Sequence record: NC_031245.1
Length of the DNA stretch: 64,000 bases
Direction: 5' to 3' (one strand)
The notes under the pieces were generated by a model, which did no database searches, was not told where the DNA came from, and saw only the letters and a list, made by a program, of their open reading frames with translations. Below are positions 2,589 to 56,437 of this stretch, in pieces. The translations under genes were made by a program, and so were the position numbers. Within the stretch, counting starts at the first letter, position 1. The number at the start of each line of letters is the position of its first letter.

Positions 2589-4448
2589 TTGAGTAACACT
2601 CAAGTATTAGAGTCCAAAATCAAAGAATTGTCTCAAGCCTATTACGGAGGTCAGTCAGTAGTTACCGATGAAACTTTCGATGCATTAGTTGATGAATTGC
2701 GTAAAATTGATCCAGGTAATCCTGTACTTACACAAGTAGGTTGGGGATTTGATGTATCCAAGTCCAACCTAACTAAAGTCACTCATACATACGGTAAGGT
2801 AGGGTCACTCGATAAAGTCAAATCTGTTAGAGGTGTAGTCAAGAATCTTGGTGAAAAGAACTTGATCGGTACTCCTAAGCTAGATGGCTTAACTGTAGTG
2901 GCTTATTATACCAATGGGATTTTTACTCGAGGAGTTACTCGTGGTGACGGAACGACTGGTCAAGACGTTACATACAAAATTAAGGATAAAGTTCCAGCAG
3001 TCATAGGAGAGTTTACTGGAGCGATACGTGGCGAGTTCATCTTACCTCTAACTAATTGGAAGAAGTTCTATCCAGATGCTCCAAGTCCACGTAATACAGC
3101 TTCAGGAGTTATCAATCGTAAGTCGGTTAGTGACGAGGAACTTAGCAGATTCGAATACATCGTCTATCAAGTAGTCGGAGGTAATATAGCATTCGACGAG
3201 AAAGATGATATGTTGTTCTGGTTGAAGGATGCTGGATTCAAAGTAGTCCCATTTGGAGTTTATCCTTCATTGAAATGTGAACCTGAATACATGAAATCAG
3301 AGATCGATAGAATGTCTAAAGAGCTTGACTTACCTCTTGATGGTATGGTGTTGGAGGACAATCTGCTAGTAACTGAAAATGGTAATGGTCGAGTAATTGC
3401 TGACCAAGTAGCTTATAAAGTTCAAAACGATACAGCAGTCGCTAGGATCAAGTCCATTAAGTGGTCACTAACTCGTACAGGAAAGTATACTCCAGTAGCA
3501 ATTCTTGAACCGACCGAGTTATCTGGAGCAACAATTCGTCGAGCTTCTGTGTACAATGCTGAATACGTTGAGAAACATAAACTCGGAGCAGGTGCTCTAG
3601 TAACCATAGTTCGTTCAGGAGAAATTATCCCAGTTGTTTTAGATGTAATCGAACCTAGTGATGAAGCACTTCCTACCCACACGGAGGATGGTGAACCATT
3701 GGTACGTGAAGGTACGGATTTGAAGCTTGCATCCGAATCCAGTAACCACTTGACTCGAGCTCGTCTGATACATTGGATTGAACGTATAGGAGCTACAGAT
3801 GGTATCGGAGGTAAGGTATTAGATAAGGTTCTCGAAGAATTAGGTATCGATAAAATCCAAGATATCTACACTAAAGATTACGACGTAAATTCTCTGCACG
3901 GACTTAATGGTTTCGGTGAATCAACAACTGGTAAGGTTCATGAAATGTTTAGTAAGTTGAAATCCCCAATAACTCCTAAGAGATTCCTAATTGCCTTAGG
4001 ACTTCCTTCACTAGCTGGTAGTTCGGCAGAGAAGTTGATAGCTTCCGTAGGTCTTGATGGAATACTCGAAGGTAAGGTTACTTCTTCCACAAAGATCAAG
4101 GGAGTTAACAAGAATGCAATAGGTGGTATCGTTAGTAACATTGACCTAATCAAAGAAATTGCTAGTCTGGTCAAGTTCAAAGAAGTTGATCCAGCACCTA
4201 CGACTTCTCAGGAAGTTCGATTCAAGGTAGCATTAACTGGTAAGTTGAACAATGGTCGCAAACGATCTGAACTCGAGAAATTACTTAAAGAGAACGGAAT
4301 AGGAACTGGTGATGTTAAATCAGGTACTAAGTATCTGATAACCAACAATCCTGATCCAACTTCGAGTAAGGGTAAGAAAGCTAAGAAGGAAGGCATCGAA
4401 ATTATTACGGAGGATGCATTCCTAGCGAAGTATAACTTGAGCTACTAA
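2589..4448 (+). CDS. ligA: NAD-dependent DNA ligase
   Basis: KLDG adenylation motif, TRGDGTTGQDVT, OB-fold TRTGKYTP..LSGATIRRAS, HhH repeats, C-terminal BRCT; TTG 2589 after GGGGG RBS (track start 2568). Confidence 0.95.
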   Translation: MSNTQVLESKIKELSQAYYGGQSVVTDETFDALVDELRKIDPGNPVLTQVGWGFDVSKSNLTKVTHTYGKVGSLDKVKSVRGVVKNLGEKNLIGTPKLDGLTVVAYYTNGIFTRGVTRGDGTTGQDVTYKIKDKVPAVIGEFTGAIRGEFILPLTNWKKFYPDAPSPRNTASGVINRKSVSDEELSRFEYIVYQVVGGNIAFDEKDDMLFWLKDAGFKVVPFGVYPSLKCEPEYMKSEIDRMSKELDLPLDGMVLEDNLLVTENGNGRVIADQVAYKVQNDTAVARIKSIKWSLTRTGKYTPVAILEPTELSGATIRRASVYNAEYVEKHKLGAGALVTIVRSGEIIPVVLDVIEPSDEALPTHTEDGEPLVREGTDLKLASESSNHLTRARLIHWIERIGATDGIGGKVLDKVLEELGIDKIQDIYTKDYDVNSLHGLNGFGESTTGKVHEMFSKLKSPITPKRFLIALGLPSLAGSSAEKLIASVGLDGILEGKVTSSTKIKGVNKNAIGGIVSNIDLIKEIASLVKFKEVDPAPTTSQEVRFKVALTGKLNNGRKRSELEKLLKENGIGTGDVKSGTKYLITNNPDPTSSKGKKAKKEGIEIITEDAFLAKYNLSY

Positions 4449-15756: not shown

Positions 15757-15785
15757 GCTCGAATCAACCTCCTCGAACGTTTATA
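15757..15785 (+). promoter_or_regulatory. phage-specific bipartite promoter motif
   Basis: GCTCGAAT-N10-GAACGTTTATA. Confidence 0.8.
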
Positions 15786-26660: not shown

Positions 26661-26696
26661 CCTTATAAGTACTTAATTAATTAAGTACTTATAAGG
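26661..26696. repeat. perfect 36-bp palindrome
   Basis: CCTTATAAGTACTTAATTAATTAAGTACTTATAAGG equals its own reverse complement. Confidence 0.95.
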
Positions 26697-43724: not shown

Positions 43725-43753
43725 GCTGGATTCAGTCCTTTTGAACGTTTATA
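43725..43753 (+). promoter_or_regulatory. phage-specific bipartite promoter motif
   Basis: GCTGGATT-N10-GAACGTTTATA-TTGG-TGAAG. Confidence 0.8.
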
Positions 43754-43810
43754 TTGGTGAAGCAGGTGTATCCTGTAGATAAATAGACATCTAGGAGGAG
43801 AACATACGAT

Positions 43811-44475: not shown

Positions 44476-45375
44476 ATGGGAGAAGTCTATAAGATCACAA
44501 ATCTCGTTAATGGTAAAGTTTATATAGGTAGTTCTACTCAAAGTGGACAAGTTAGAATGGACTACCATATGGCTAAAATAGGGGATGCAGCTGGACCATT
44601 CTACTCTGAGATAGATAAATACGGTAAACGTAACTTCCAACTAAGTATTATCTGTAAGGTGGAGGACGAGAATGACCTACGAGAATTGGAGTACGAGCTT
44701 ATTCGAGAACATATTGAAGTGTTAGGTCGTGATCAAGTTTACAACGTAGCAACTCATGTTGATTACTGGAGAGATAGGTCTCATGATCCGGATGTAGTCG
44801 CAAAACGTATGGAGACTATGAGGAGAAGATATGGAATACTCCCTATAAACGACCCTAAATATAGAGAAAAGGCTATTCAATCCCAAATCGACAAATACGG
44901 TAGCTTAGCTTTCCATACACCTGAAGCTCGAGCTAAATCTAATGAAGCATCCCAAACAGATGAAGCTAAAGCTAAGAGAGTAGCTACTCAAGTAGAACGT
45001 TATGGTTCCTTAGGATTCCATACACCTGAAGCTAGGAAGAAGTCAATCGAAATGGCTAGTAAACCTGAAGTCCAACGTAGACGAGTAGCTACGGATAAAG
45101 CTAGGCATGGTGGGAGATTAGCTGCTCATAGTCCTGAAGCTATTGAAAAGAATAAACGTACTAGATCCAACATTGTTGAATATAAAGGTATCGAGTACGC
45201 AGGACTGGCGGATTTGAGGAAGGCATTACGAGAAGATGGGTACGAAGTTCCTGCAACTACTCTGAATCGAATGGTACAGTATAATCGATTCCCTGAGAAG
45301 TATAAGGAGTTAGAAGGCAAGTTCAAGTTAGTGAGACTGGGAGTAATTACTAAACTAGCTAAGAATAAGAAGTAA
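44476..45375 (+). CDS. free-standing GIY-YIG homing endonuclease with internal repeats
   Basis: VYKITNLVNGKVYIGSS; repeated YGSL(A/G)FHTPEAR. Confidence 0.88.
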   Translation: MGEVYKITNLVNGKVYIGSSTQSGQVRMDYHMAKIGDAAGPFYSEIDKYGKRNFQLSIICKVEDENDLRELEYELIREHIEVLGRDQVYNVATHVDYWRDRSHDPDVVAKRMETMRRRYGILPINDPKYREKAIQSQIDKYGSLAFHTPEARAKSNEASQTDEAKAKRVATQVERYGSLGFHTPEARKKSIEMASKPEVQRRRVATDKARHGGRLAAHSPEAIEKNKRTRSNIVEYKGIEYAGLADLRKALREDGYEVPATTLNRMVQYNRFPEKYKELEGKFKLVRLGVITKLAKNKK

Positions 45376-45402
45376 AAAAGAGGTAGGGTTAATCCCCTAC
45401 CT
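45375..45402 (-). terminator. terminator between convergent genes
   Basis: AGGTAGGG/CCCTACCT stem with A-run on the left, giving a U-tract on the - strand. Confidence 0.7.
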
Positions 45403-46010
45403 TACTCTCCGAAATATGAACGAACAATCTTACGAGCTTTCTTTTTCATAGAACGGTAACTTCCGCTACCAGAACTCGACCATCCGAGCTCTCTCGCCAT
45501 TCTGTGTTCACTGTCTTCCATATGTACCAAACGCTCTGCATCGATTGTTGGCTCAAGTTCAACTGCTTCATTCAATTCAAACACACCTTCGATGTAACCT
45601 TTCATAACAACGAACTTACGTTCCTTAGAACCAATTTCGAATTGTTCAACCATTTCCTTGATTTCGAAGAATTTCTCAGGTTGACGGAAAGGACGTTCAG
45701 CCATCAAAGGATTTCTTGAATTTCCAATTTCTCTTGCCCAAGCAGATACCGTTTCGTCTGAAACCATGTCTGTCTTTGAATCCCAACGACGTCTTTCATA
45801 ACGGTAAACGTCAACCGCTTTATTGTAAGAAGTACGAGCAACAATTTTTTCATTTGGAACTTTCTCGCCATCCGAAATTTCAAGAAGTTTTAACCAAAGT
45901 TCTTGTTCCAAGTCCGAAGTTTCAATTCCAAATTCACGACCGTACTTACGAGAAACACCTTTAACAATTTGAGTAACCTTTTCGCCAAAAACCTCTTTTA
46001 AATTTTCCAT
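45402..46010 (-). CDS. phage RNA polymerase sigma factor (sigma70 family, ECF/group-4-like)
   Basis: region 2-like ETSDLEQELWLKLL..SYNKAVDVYRYERR; region 4-like ERKFVVMKGYIEG..RMARELGW..KKARKIV; ATG 46010 is 9 nt from GGAGG. Confidence 0.75.
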   Translation of the reverse strand: MENLKEVFGEKVTQIVKGVSRKYGREFGIETSDLEQELWLKLLEISDGEKVPNEKIVARTSYNKAVDVYRYERRRWDSKTDMVSDETVSAWAREIGNSRNPLMAERPFRQPEKFFEIKEMVEQFEIGSKERKFVVMKGYIEGVFELNEAVELEPTIDAERLVHMEDSEHRMARELGWSSSGSGSYRSMKKKARKIVRSYFGE

Positions 46011-46288
46011 TATCAAAAACCTCCAAGTTTTAATTTAGCAACCAACCACGGTGCTGTGTTTTTTTTTAGGAGTGGGGGAACCGAATTCGACCCCCACAAG
46101 ACAAGTATGCCCCAAATTCGCTTAAAAAGCACCCCCGATATAACCCCGTATGAGGTGAAATTCCCTGGGTTTCCGCACATTATCGCCCTTAATCACCCCC
46201 AATCGCCCTTTTTCGAATTTGAGGAAAAATTTTCGATAACGAGCTTGAAGCAACTTTCATAGACGTAGGAGCGAATCCCTACCTTATT

Positions 46289-46317
46289 ATAATATACCAC
46301 CTTGCGAACCTTGCCAA
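46289..46317 (-). promoter_or_regulatory. sigmaA-type promoter for the sigma gene
   Basis: TTGGCA-N17-TATTAT on the - strand, overlapping TATAAT. Confidence 0.6.
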
Positions 46318-46421
46318 AGGGTAATTTACCTCGTAATAACGCTCAAAAGCCTTGTAGCCAGTCCCTAAAGGTTTCAGCGAACCGCCTGTCGCTGTCAATT
46401 CTAGAAGCCTTCTACGAGCTT

Positions 46422-46450
46422 GCTCCTATAAGGGTTGCTAAACGTTTATA
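46422..46450 (+). promoter_or_regulatory. phage-specific bipartite promoter motif
   Basis: GCTCCTAT-N10-AAACGTTTATA-GTTG-TGAAG. Confidence 0.75.
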
Positions 46451-46497
46451 GTTGTGAAGGAAGTTTGGTATAGAAATAATGAACAAAGGATGATTTT

Positions 46498-47787
46498 ATG
46501 CTTCATGAACCTCTAGCTAATCGTATCAGACCTACGACTATTGAAGAAGTTATAGGTCAATCGCACCTATTAGGTGAGGACAAACCTCTATACAAAATGA
46601 TCAAGAACAACCAACTATCTTCATTAATACTCCATGGACCTCCAGGAATCGGTAAAACTACTATCGCTAGTGCTATTGCTGGTAGTTGTGGACTTCCGTT
46701 CGAACAACTGAATGCTGTAAGTGCTGGTAAGAAAGATTTGGAGAAAGTAACCAAGGAGTACAAGGAAGAAGATACTTCGGTAGTACTTTATGTGGATGAA
46801 ATCCATAGGTTCACTAAGAACCAAGTTGAATACCTTTTACCGTACGTAGAATCGGGTAAGATTATTCTTGTAGGTTCAACGACTGAATCAGTTTACCACG
46901 CACTTCCTAGTGCAATCTTAAGTCGATGTACGGTATTTGAACTCAAGCCATTAACTTCAGAAGAAATAGTCTTAGGACTTAGTCGAGCTCTGCAGGATAA
47001 AGATGGTTTAGTTGAATATATGATAACTTGGGATGATAGTTTACTAGAACGTATTGCACAACTATCAGGTGGAGATATGAGATCCGCTTTAAATATACTA
47101 GAAGTCCTAGTTGTAACAAATGCGGATACAGAAACTAAGCAGACTGTTAACCTAACACTAGAAATGGTGGATTCAGTTAGCGGTACCAAGAATCTAGGTT
47201 ATAACGGCAAGGATACATTATACGATTTAATGTCAGCATTTCAGAAATCCATTCGAGGTTCCGATGTTAATGCAGCATTATACTACCTAGCATTACTTAT
47301 CGAGAGCGGAGACTTACCTAGTATTTGTAGAAGACTTCTAGTTATAGCGGACGAGGACATAGGTCTAGCTCGACCTGAAGTAGCTACACATGTACTAACA
47401 GCAGTTCAGATAACTGAAAGGATAGGACTACCTGAAGCTAGAATTACTTTATCTAAAGCTGTTATTGAACTATGTCTATCTCCTAAATCAAATACTGCCT
47501 ACCAAGCTATCGATAATGCATTAGCGGATATTAGGAATGGACAAGCTTATTCGCCACCTGACCACTTGAAAGATGCACATTATAAAAGTGCAGCTGATCG
47601 AGGTCACGGAGTAGGGTACTTGTACCCTCACAACTACGAACTACAGGATTATGGCGGATGGTGTAACCAGCAATACCTTCCAGATAAATTAAGAGGTCGA
47701 TTATACTACAGACCCAAGAATAATGGCTATGAAAGAGGTATTTCATCGATATATTGGGGACTGGAACAGTTAAAGTCCAATCAATAA
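46498..47787 (+). CDS. rarA: replication-associated recombination protein A (RarA/MgsA)
   Basis: PLANRIRP, GQSHLLG, GPPGIGKTT, VDEIHRF, GSTTE, SAFQKSIRGSDVNAALYYL, PPDHLKDAHY, YLYPH. Confidence 0.96.
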   Translation: MLHEPLANRIRPTTIEEVIGQSHLLGEDKPLYKMIKNNQLSSLILHGPPGIGKTTIASAIAGSCGLPFEQLNAVSAGKKDLEKVTKEYKEEDTSVVLYVDEIHRFTKNQVEYLLPYVESGKIILVGSTTESVYHALPSAILSRCTVFELKPLTSEEIVLGLSRALQDKDGLVEYMITWDDSLLERIAQLSGGDMRSALNILEVLVVTNADTETKQTVNLTLEMVDSVSGTKNLGYNGKDTLYDLMSAFQKSIRGSDVNAALYYLALLIESGDLPSICRRLLVIADEDIGLARPEVATHVLTAVQITERIGLPEARITLSKAVIELCLSPKSNTAYQAIDNALADIRNGQAYSPPDHLKDAHYKSAADRGHGVGYLYPHNYELQDYGGWCNQQYLPDKLRGRLYYRPKNNGYERGISSIYWGLEQLKSNQ

Positions 47788-56417: not shown

Positions 56418-56437
56418 GATAGTCCTAGACGTCTATA
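56409..56437 (+). promoter_or_regulatory. phage-specific bipartite promoter motif
   Basis: GCTCATTA-N10-AGACGTCTATA. Confidence 0.7.

Follow-up and report, generated by a model that had tools for sequence, protein, structure and literature searches.

In the phage SPO1, the host sigmaA factor makes gp28, which opens the middle promoters, and gp33/gp34 follow. A second point of reference is given by the bacterial extracytoplasmic function (ECF) sigma factors, including SigW, SigM and SigX of B. subtilis and SigH of Mycobacterium tuberculosis, which are proteins of about 200 amino acids (aa) with two helical domains and a flexible linker. Here we analyzed a stretch of 64,000 nucleotides (nt), hereafter the window, which is 100% identical to Bacillus phage SP-15 (KT624200 / NC_031245, 221,908 bp; record positions 124001-188000, so that a window coordinate equals the record coordinate minus 124000). 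SP-15 is a 222-kb phage noted for its heavily hypermodified thymine. Our subject is the gene SP15_217 (gp217), annotated in the record as a hypothetical protein, for which an original prediction had proposed the role of a sigma factor, expressed from a host sigmaA promoter and acting as the master switch of a phage promoter motif.

We estimate a probability of about 0.5 that gp217 is a starter sigma factor, made from a host-read promoter that we term Psig, which would open a regulon of motif promoters including that of its paralogue gp78. This proposal resembles the SPO1 system in several respects: both concern a B. subtilis phage with modified thymine in which a phage sigma factor redirects, or in SP-15 would redirect, the host core RNA polymerase, and in both a large phage promoter class has its own bipartite consensus and further phage sigma activity follows or is proposed to follow. 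SPO1 gp28 showed no sequence homology to gp217 in a tblastn search of 50,697 phage records, which we assume to include SPO1-like phages. SPO1 differs further in its promoter consensus, and the putative SP-15 sigma factors are close paralogues, one of them in an inverted cassette.

The bacterial ECF sigma factors are matched by gp217 in size, domain layout and linker and in the region-2 signatures; SigH is the best structural match, the phage motif has a CGT-containing -10 element, and gp78 lies behind its presumed own promoter. The SP-15 proteins differ in that their hidden Markov model (HMM) scores stay under the cut-offs, in that ~25 extra residues are inserted in the C-terminal domain, which cannot be recognised as domain 4, in that the motif has GCT rather than AAC at -35, and in that no anti-sigma partner was found.

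True homologues are present in Bacillus phage vB_BceM-HSE3 (HSE3; Gp01 and Gp103) and in Listeria phage LIS04 (LIS04_17 and LIS04_95), in both with the same two-copy arrangement, motif regulon and Psig block; both LIS04 copies are co-directional with their neighbours, unlike gp217. HSE3 Gp01 and Gp103 were named as divergent phage sigma factors missed by standard domain filters in a classification of ECF sigma factors (10.1101/2019.12.11.873521). The HSE3 and LIS04 homologues are annotated as sigma-70 family proteins and gp78 of SP-15 also as a sigma factor, whereas SP15_217 is labelled hypothetical. In the literature searched, neither the motif nor Psig nor the two-copy arrangement has been described, and the words promoter, sigma, RNA polymerase and transcription are all missing from the SP-15 genome paper. 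The papers on SP-15 and its relatives that were searched are likewise silent on its sigma factors and promoters. The new sigma-promoter pair of the original prediction is new as a prediction, whereas the kind of system and the sigma label of the family were already known.

gp217 as a putative ECF-like sigma factor

The gp217 family is small: 12 homologous proteins were recovered by a word-index search, and 72 when 1.84 billion representatives were searched exhaustively with HMMER. Full-length homology was found between gp217 and SP15_078 (gp78), LIS04_17, LIS04_95 and HSE3 gp103 (a Thornevirus-group family), with 41-50% identity to the LIS04 and HSE3 homologues. The tblastn search returned SP-15, LIS04 and HSE3 only, and a scan of IMG/VR with closer alignment added one further relative, at 27% identity. 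gp217 also matches PHROG 37530 (E = 1e-130), a family without assigned function. Among 55 aligned family members, 20 matched Pfam Sigma70_r2 (best E = 1e-5) and 24 matched TIGR02937, the sigma70-ECF model (best E = 5e-7), the alignments of two homologues reaching profile positions 124 and 144 of 165. All 22 NCBIfam families matched by the gp217 family are sigma factors or a sigma-factor regulator. A profile of the 55 homologues searched against PDB sequences gave a weak ECF sigma match only (E = 0.16). The protein itself bears the signatures DLxQELW and YNKAVDxYRxxRR, which are typical of sigma regions 2.2 and 2.4.

The AlphaFold2 (AF2) model of gp217 built on the family alignment (predicted local distance difference test score, pLDDT, 88) consists of two helical domains joined by a low-confidence, flexible linker at residues 98-110. 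With 202 aa in two domains, gp217 fits the ECF layout, in which regions 1.1 and 3 are missing and the length is about 170-220 aa. Nearly all top Foldseek matches, in the PDB as in BFVD, were sigma factors. In the PDB, M. tuberculosis SigH was the top match (probability 0.82); the N-terminal domain was similar to that of SigE with a template modelling (TM) score of 0.60-0.63. In BFVD, phage sigma factors were matched at probabilities of 0.90-0.94.

Several results weigh against this assignment. gp217 alone had no match in Pfam at E<=1 and none among PDB sequences, the HMM scores of the family all fell under the curated cut-offs, and the Foldseek E-values of the full-length model, self-match aside, were all at least 0.04; no match was strongly significant. 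When the C-terminal domain was modelled alone (pLDDT 90), comparison with the PDB recovered no sigma domain 4, the best match being DnaA domain IV (TM 0.43, not significant). A profile search of PDB sequences for this domain returned nothing relevant. Its layout comprises a 4.1-like helix, the ~25-residue insertion, a short helix and a long basic helix. We regard sigma domain 2 as supported, through family HMM matches and predicted fold, and infer from the layout that the C-terminal domain may act as sigma domain 4. The region 2-like motifs that had been claimed for gp217 thus stand through the family and the fold, whereas the region 4 likeness was not confirmed. As judged from family profiles and predicted structure, gp217 is a divergent ECF-like member of the sigma-70 family, and we recommend that the annotation of SP15_217 be changed to putative sigma factor.

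Outside the window, at record 76605-77303, lies the paralogue gp78, which shares 70% identity with gp217 over the full length; its annotation already names it a sigma factor of the sigma-70 family, and it has a weak Sigma70_r2 match (E = 0.0033). The ratio of non-synonymous to synonymous substitution rates (dN/dS) between the two genes is 0.09 with synonymous sites saturated, indicating an old duplication in which both copies are under purifying selection. Their region-2-like helices are near-identical (DLEQELWLK and ARTSYNKAVDVYR.ERRRWDSK), and their differences cluster in the loop past KLLE (residues 44-56, with a 2-residue indel) and in the predicted recognition helix. In that helix, the residue after SYR is S or T in family members inverted relative to their neighbours and K in most co-directional ones. 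In ECF sigma factors, -10 specificity is set by the loop corresponding to this most divergent loop of gp217 and gp78. In a tree of close homologues, the two paralogue types did not fall into clearly distinct groups, and one homologue (P0003) has gp78-like synteny, yet a sequence nearer to gp217.

The phage promoter motif and its regulon

The window contains 24 copies of ACGTYTATA on the plus strand and none on the minus strand, and the 14-mer described in the original prediction, allowing at most one mismatch, had 11 matches in the window against 0.55 expected from shuffles. Across the SP-15 genome we found 68 ACGTYTA(T/C)A sites, 59 of them with GCT exactly at -20 to -18. The motif has the form GCT-N17-ACGTYTATA-N-TTGTGAAG, with the full consensus T..GCT(c/g).ATT-N-ACGTYTATA.TtGTGaag; the motif reported earlier is thus real, although the conserved GCT sits 17 nt, not 2 nt, upstream of ACGTYTATA. 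Comparison of the ACGTC and ACGTT subclasses revealed no difference in flanking positions, indicating a single promoter class. The sites track gene orientation, with four minus-strand sites in the gp71-77 cluster, and are essentially missing from the structural/lysis module at 20-72 kb. They precede replication genes, nucleotide-metabolism genes and many small genes. Tandem pairs of plus-strand motif promoters were observed at window positions 15777 and 15865 (88 nt apart) and at 56429 and 56537 (108 nt apart).

The CGTYTA element resembles ECF-type -10 elements. Where an ECF promoter is expected to carry an AAC -35 element and a CGT-containing -10 element, the phage motif has CGTYTA at -10 and GCT, without AAC, at -35. 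In no register does it appear, from its sequence, to fit a sigmaA promoter.

The motif is shared by the relatives. HSE3 has 28 plus-strand sites of the form aGGCTCT-N14-ACGTTTATA, again missing from the structural module, and GCT-N17-ACGTTTATA sites are present in LIS04 and on the metagenomic Logan contigs; the sigma family and the motif co-occur in every relative found. In the relative with 27% identity, we observed promoter-like sites of the form TGAGA-N17-(A)GCGTTTATA.TTGTGTAAG, in which CGTTTATA-N-TTGTGTAAG is kept and TGAGA stands at -35. The sigma protein of this phage conserves the helix YNRAVDIYR and has a diverged C-terminal helix. Conservation of the -10 and start region thus parallels that of the N-terminal helix, and the change at -35 parallels that of the C-terminal helix, a single example which points in the expected direction.

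An inverted cassette behind a conserved promoter

The window has 69 open reading frames (ORFs) that reach 110 aa or more, of which 68 lie on the plus strand and gp217 is the sole minus-strand one, in agreement with the original prediction. The minus-strand coding sequences (CDSs) annotated in this part of SP-15 are gp217 and the doubtful ORF 217A only, and elsewhere in the whole genome minus-strand genes form the cluster gp71-77 only. The gp217 ORF is intact, running from 45402 to 46016 with a TTG start or to 46010 with an ATG start; the ATG, 9 nt past GGAGG, is more plausibly the start than the TTG. The terminator predicted for the gene was confirmed by a terminator scan, which found a G+C-rich hairpin with a T-run directly 3' of the stop codon, and by the annotation of the record.

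The promoter assigned to gp217 by the original prediction fared less well. The TTGGCA-N17-TATTAT match is present; matches of this kind occur at chance frequency (10 sigma-70-like promoter matches in a 4-kb region versus 9.2 in shuffles), and this one is not conserved at the orthologous locus of a metagenomic phage (L010). It is probably not the promoter used. The best-supported candidate on comparative grounds is instead Psig, located ~180 nt downstream. Alignment of the regions upstream of gp217 and gp78 first brought to light a conserved non-coding block, GTGCTTTTT...CGAATTTGGGG(C/G)ATA(A/C)T.GTCTTGTGGGGG.CGAATTCG, and a pattern search placed the SP-15 copies of Psig at record positions 76503 (gp78), 170132 (window 46132, gp217) and 201723 (gp272). 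The block also stands 5' of the sigma genes of HSE3 (two tandem copies), of LIS04_95 (two copies), of LIS04_17 (a degenerate copy) and on two Logan contigs, and the pattern had only these 10 sites in the 224 kb of sequence searched.

The -35 element of Psig reads TTGCTT, GTGCTT, TGGCTT or, in LIS04_17, TTGCCT, and is followed by a 17-nt spacer. G is present at -14 in nine of the 10 copies, three of which have the full TG of an extended -10 element, and the -10 element is (C/G)ATAAT in eight copies, CATACT in gp217 and CACAAT in LIS04_17. A TTGCTT-type -35, a 17-nt spacer, a -14 G and an ATAAT-type -10 are features of Gram-positive sigmaA promoters, and ECF sigma factors, being without region 3, are unable to read an extended -10 element. 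These features suggest that sigmaA reads Psig. Psig and the phage motif share GCT at -35, the 17-nt spacing and the TTGTG start region, and differ only in the -10 block, GG(C/G)ATAAT versus ACGTYTATA. As to the claim that gp217 has none of the phage motif upstream, the full motif is indeed missing, whereas an 8/9 copy of its -10 half, ACGTCTATG, is present; its counterpart in L010 is ACGTTTAGG, and the SP-15 copy may be either a relic or a weak site.

From the position of Psig, the gp217 transcript would start near window 46097, giving a leader of ~87 nt with a predicted hairpin first. The palindrome CGAATTCG (46089-46082) lies inside this predicted stem-loop, which may serve as a hairpin at the 5' end of the mRNA, as an operator or as both, and the other Psig copies are also trailed by a G-rich hairpin or a GAATTC box. 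Further into the leader, at 15-25 nt before the ribosome-binding site, the sigma genes of SP-15, LIS04 and the Logan contigs share the box TGGTTGGTTG, which in HSE3 gp001 is replaced by CCAAACCAAACCAAA. The GGAGG/ACTTGGAGGT element is likewise kept in the sigma-gene leaders. An Rfam scan of 45200-46700 returned two weak, chance-level matches only and no known RNA element.

Psig is part of a ~170-nt non-coding module that is repeated near-identically 5' of gp272 (record ~201615-201780) and in a more diverged form 5' of gp78. The indels that distinguish the module copies from one another have lengths not divisible by three, and no ORF is present in the copy at gp78; the annotated ORF SP15_217A is therefore probably not a gene. 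ORF 271A, which overlies the gp272 module, is probably spurious as well. The copy before gp272 (L006:1615-1830, record ~201615-201830) carries neither TGGTTGGTTG nor GGAGG/ACTTGGAGGT. The gp272 protein (99 aa) is acidic and helical and belongs to no Pfam family, and the presence of a third Psig module in front of its gene suggests that it is co-regulated with both sigma genes; it could be an RNA polymerase-binding cofactor or an anti-sigma factor.

Promoters of the two copies across relatives

The inverted (M-type) copies, SP-15 gp217, Logan P0007 and HSE3 gp001, all run against the strand of their neighbours, with Psig and without the phage motif, and HSE3 gp001 is the only minus-strand gene of the HSE3 genome. 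The co-directional (P-type) copies have the canonical motif upstream in SP-15, the Logan phage, LIS04 and HSE3 (4/4 genomes); in SP-15 this motif lies at record 76435, before gp78. The gp78-type copies have a common synteny, after the lysis genes and before the topoisomerase/gyrase genes. No Psig was seen at the co-directional copies of HSE3 and the Logan phage, for the latter in 181 nt of upstream sequence only. In both phages, the inverted copy is the one sigma gene not placed behind the motif, as would be expected of a switch at the top of a cascade. In the relative with 27% identity, a single sigma gene lies behind TTTACA-N17-TATAAT. If the host holoenzyme is unable to read the motif, the inverted copy would therefore be made first and open the motif class. 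This promoter pattern favours gp217 as the starter sigma factor and gp78 as the amplifier or the next stage.

Other observations count against this order. SP-15 is less clean than HSE3 or the Logan phage in that gp78 bears both the motif and Psig, and in LIS04 neither copy is inverted relative to its neighbours and each has the motif upstream. Given the near-identical region-2 helices and its Psig copy, gp78 could be made equally early and read the motif. The -35 element of Psig matches TTGACA at only 2-3/6 positions and the conservation of the block extends well past the hexamers, and a reader other than, or in addition to, sigmaA is possible. In addition, no late-promoter motif was seen by eye in the intergenic regions of the structural modules of SP-15 and HSE3 (36-89 kb in the latter). 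The master-switch role claimed for gp217 accordingly stands in part: it is favoured by the Psig-only inverted copies and by the co-occurrence of motif and sigma family in all relatives, whereas the paralogue behind the motif could read it too, and on sequence grounds the role would have to be shared with gp78.

Proposed circuit and alternative explanations

In the proposed circuit, Psig, the leader, gp217 and the terminator would form a self-contained cassette on the strand opposite to the neighbouring genes. As Psig has the features of a host sigmaA promoter, gp217 would be made early by the host sigmaA holoenzyme, without any phage factor. gp217 would then bind the host core RNA polymerase and steer it to the ~59 motif promoters, one of which would drive gp78, and gp78 in turn would amplify the same programme or take over a later one. 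On this proposal, it is gp217 rather than gp78 that would read the motif first. Plus-strand transcription from 43745 would converge on gp217 and may damp it later in infection. A terminator scan found no plus-strand terminator between 45375 and 46264, and middle transcription may therefore run antisense through gp217. Read on the plus strand, the hairpin of the gp217 terminator is not followed by a T-run, and ahead of the RarA promoter this strand has a single terminator-like site, a weak one at 46265-46282. Convergent transcription of this kind may silence gp217.

The alternative that survives best, though we consider it unlikely, is that gp78 reads the motif and drives its own gene, with gp217 having diverged towards late genes or the Psig class, or serving as a backup. 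A position directly behind a canonical motif is the usual arrangement of self-activating ECF sigma factors, and its Psig copy would make early synthesis of gp78 feasible in SP-15. That the two proteins differ mainly in the 44-56 loop and the predicted recognition helix would suit such a divergence, as would the structural module, which lacks the motif and needs another promoter class. Yet the gp78-type genes of HSE3 and the Logan phage have only the motif in the upstream sequence at hand and cannot come first unless something else reads it, the region-2-like helices of the two proteins are near-identical, and no late motif is detectable, a strand-biased k-mer search having returned a tandem repeat array only. 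We also found no second promoter class sharing the -10 element with a different -35: a search for a class keeping one half of the motif and changing the other returned nothing apart from Psig.

Less probable still is that neither paralogue reads the motif, which would then be recognised by a host alternative sigma factor or by an unrecognised phage polymerase or activator, leaving gp217 and gp78 in control of few genes. The link between protein and motif is drawn from sequence comparison, the C-terminal model of gp217 does not yield sigma domain 4, many large SP-15 proteins have no known function, and a CGTC-type -10 resembles those of host ECF sigma factors. However, the GCT at -35 lacks the AAC typical of Bacillus ECF promoters, and placing 59 promoters under a stress-induced host sigma factor would make for a fragile arrangement. 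In each of the relatives the motif is found together with the sigma family, and a changed C-terminal helix goes along with a changed -35 element. A rival polymerase is what the original prediction itself had named as its counter-case; SP-15 has no annotated RNA polymerase gene, and none of ten large hypothetical proteins has an RNA polymerase Pfam domain. A very divergent phage polymerase remains conceivable despite these Pfam negatives.

We regard as about equally improbable a division of -10 specificity between the paralogues, one reading Psig, in a loop of gp217, gp78 and gp272, and the other the 59-promoter regulon; this two-sigma relay would be free of host sigmaA after the first round and might be tuned to promoters in hypermodified DNA. 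Finally, it is very unlikely that gp217 is a helix-turn-helix repressor or activator with a chance likeness to sigma region 2: its lack of a Pfam match, the ordinary DNA-binding fold of DnaA domain IV and the Foldseek E-values would allow it, but the sub-threshold family matches are to sigma models only (22/22 in NCBIfam, and Sigma70_r2 in 20/55), sigma factors dominate the structural match lists of two independent libraries, and the size, the two-domain layout and the signatures of regions 2.2 and 2.4 are those of ECF sigma factors.

Surrounding features

The features of the gp217 locus are collected in Table 1, together with the genes for a small Cys-rich protein (CxxC, CxC; ~110-127 aa) whose place directly 3' of the gp78-type sigma gene is conserved between SP-15, LIS04 and the Logan contigs. 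In SP-15, this protein (SP15_079) has its own motif promoter. The protein belongs to no Pfam family and may act as a zinc-binding partner or as an anti-sigma factor.

Table 1 Features at and around the gp217 locus. Coordinates are those of the window, except where a locus prefix (L003 and the like) is given.
Feature	Position	Strand	Details
gp214-216 phage-motif promoter	43725..43762 (43745)	plus	motif match
GIY-YIG homing endonuclease gp216	44476-45375	plus	ends 27 nt from the gp217 stop codon, convergent
gp217 intrinsic terminator	45374..45402	minus	8-bp stem AGGTAGGG/CCCTACCT, then CTTTTTT; terminator scan; ARNold terminator in record
SP15_217 (gp217) CDS	45402..46010	minus	202 aa from ATG at 46010; stop codon 45402-45404
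Annotated ORF SP15_217A, 55 aa	46013..46180	minus	overlies Psig and the conserved module; no Pfam match
gp217 Shine-Dalgarno sequence GGAGG	46020..46024	minus	within conserved ACTTGGAGGT, 9 nt before ATG
Leader box TGGTTGGTTG	46039..46048	minus	also L003:26571, L007, L009, L010, L012, L013
Predicted 5'-terminal stem-loop GUGGGGG-UCGAAUUCGGUU-CCCCCAC	46072..46097	minus	RNA fold; at the inferred Psig start site
Non-coding module of ~170 nt including Psig	46075..46245	minus	several GAATT(T/C) boxes
Psig, conserved promoter of putative sigmaA type	46104..46132	minus	-35 GTGCTT 46132-46127; 17-nt spacer ending GGGG; -10 CATACT 46109-46104
8/9 copy of motif -10 half, ACGTCTATG	46258..46266	minus	without GCT at -20; between the TTGGCA match and the Psig module
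TTGGCA-N17-TATTAT (originally predicted promoter)	46289..46317	minus	found by scan; outside the repeated module
Promoter of RarA-like gene, canonical phage motif, divergent	46422..46459	plus	GCT 46422-46424, ACGTTTATA 46442-46450, then GTTGTGAAGG
Cys-rich protein genes	L003:27440-27823 (SP15_079); L011:871-1239; L013:920-1261; L007:4685-5029		directly 3' of gp78-type sigma genes

The relatives carry further sigma-like genes, namely HSE3 gp017, HSE3 gp011 and a gene for a 263-aa protein with a Sigma70_r4_2 domain on Logan contig ERR12380611_696 (L010, 7243-8034); none of the three has a homologue in SP-15, for the 263-aa protein as judged by tblastn. A SpoIIID-like DNA-binding protein is encoded in SP-15 (SP15_284, L006:10109-10393; Pfam SpoIIID E = 4e-11) and in HSE3 (gp024), and the two are possible additional transcription regulators. 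At the left end of the HSE3 record (L014:1-110), the first ~100 nt are an inverted repeat of the sequence that follows and truncate the gp001 sigma gene, whose annotated CDS (62-670) enters the promoter region; this repeat looks like an assembly artefact. At record 3770-4000, SP-15 has a tandem array of ~15 copies of ATAATAAGTACTT with 13- or 17-nt periods and a palindromic core, TAAGTACTTA. Single or double copies stand at record 76347, in the divergent region between gp77 and gp78, and at window positions 26667 and 26683, and L013 has a similar copy at its end. The array could be an origin or a protein-binding array.

Implications

In summary, our analysis has provided a testable circuit, a sharp consensus of 59 promoter sites, a Psig class of three members and two candidate sigma factors, one of which had been left unannotated. 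The general picture of phage sigma cascades would be unchanged even if the circuit is true; it would be a new example of a known phage strategy. What appears to be conserved is the design, with the putative starter sigma factor in an inverted, insulated cassette. If true, the circuit would offer an orthogonal ECF-like sigma-promoter pair for Bacillus, and it would open a way to study how promoters in hypermodified DNA are read by RNA polymerase.

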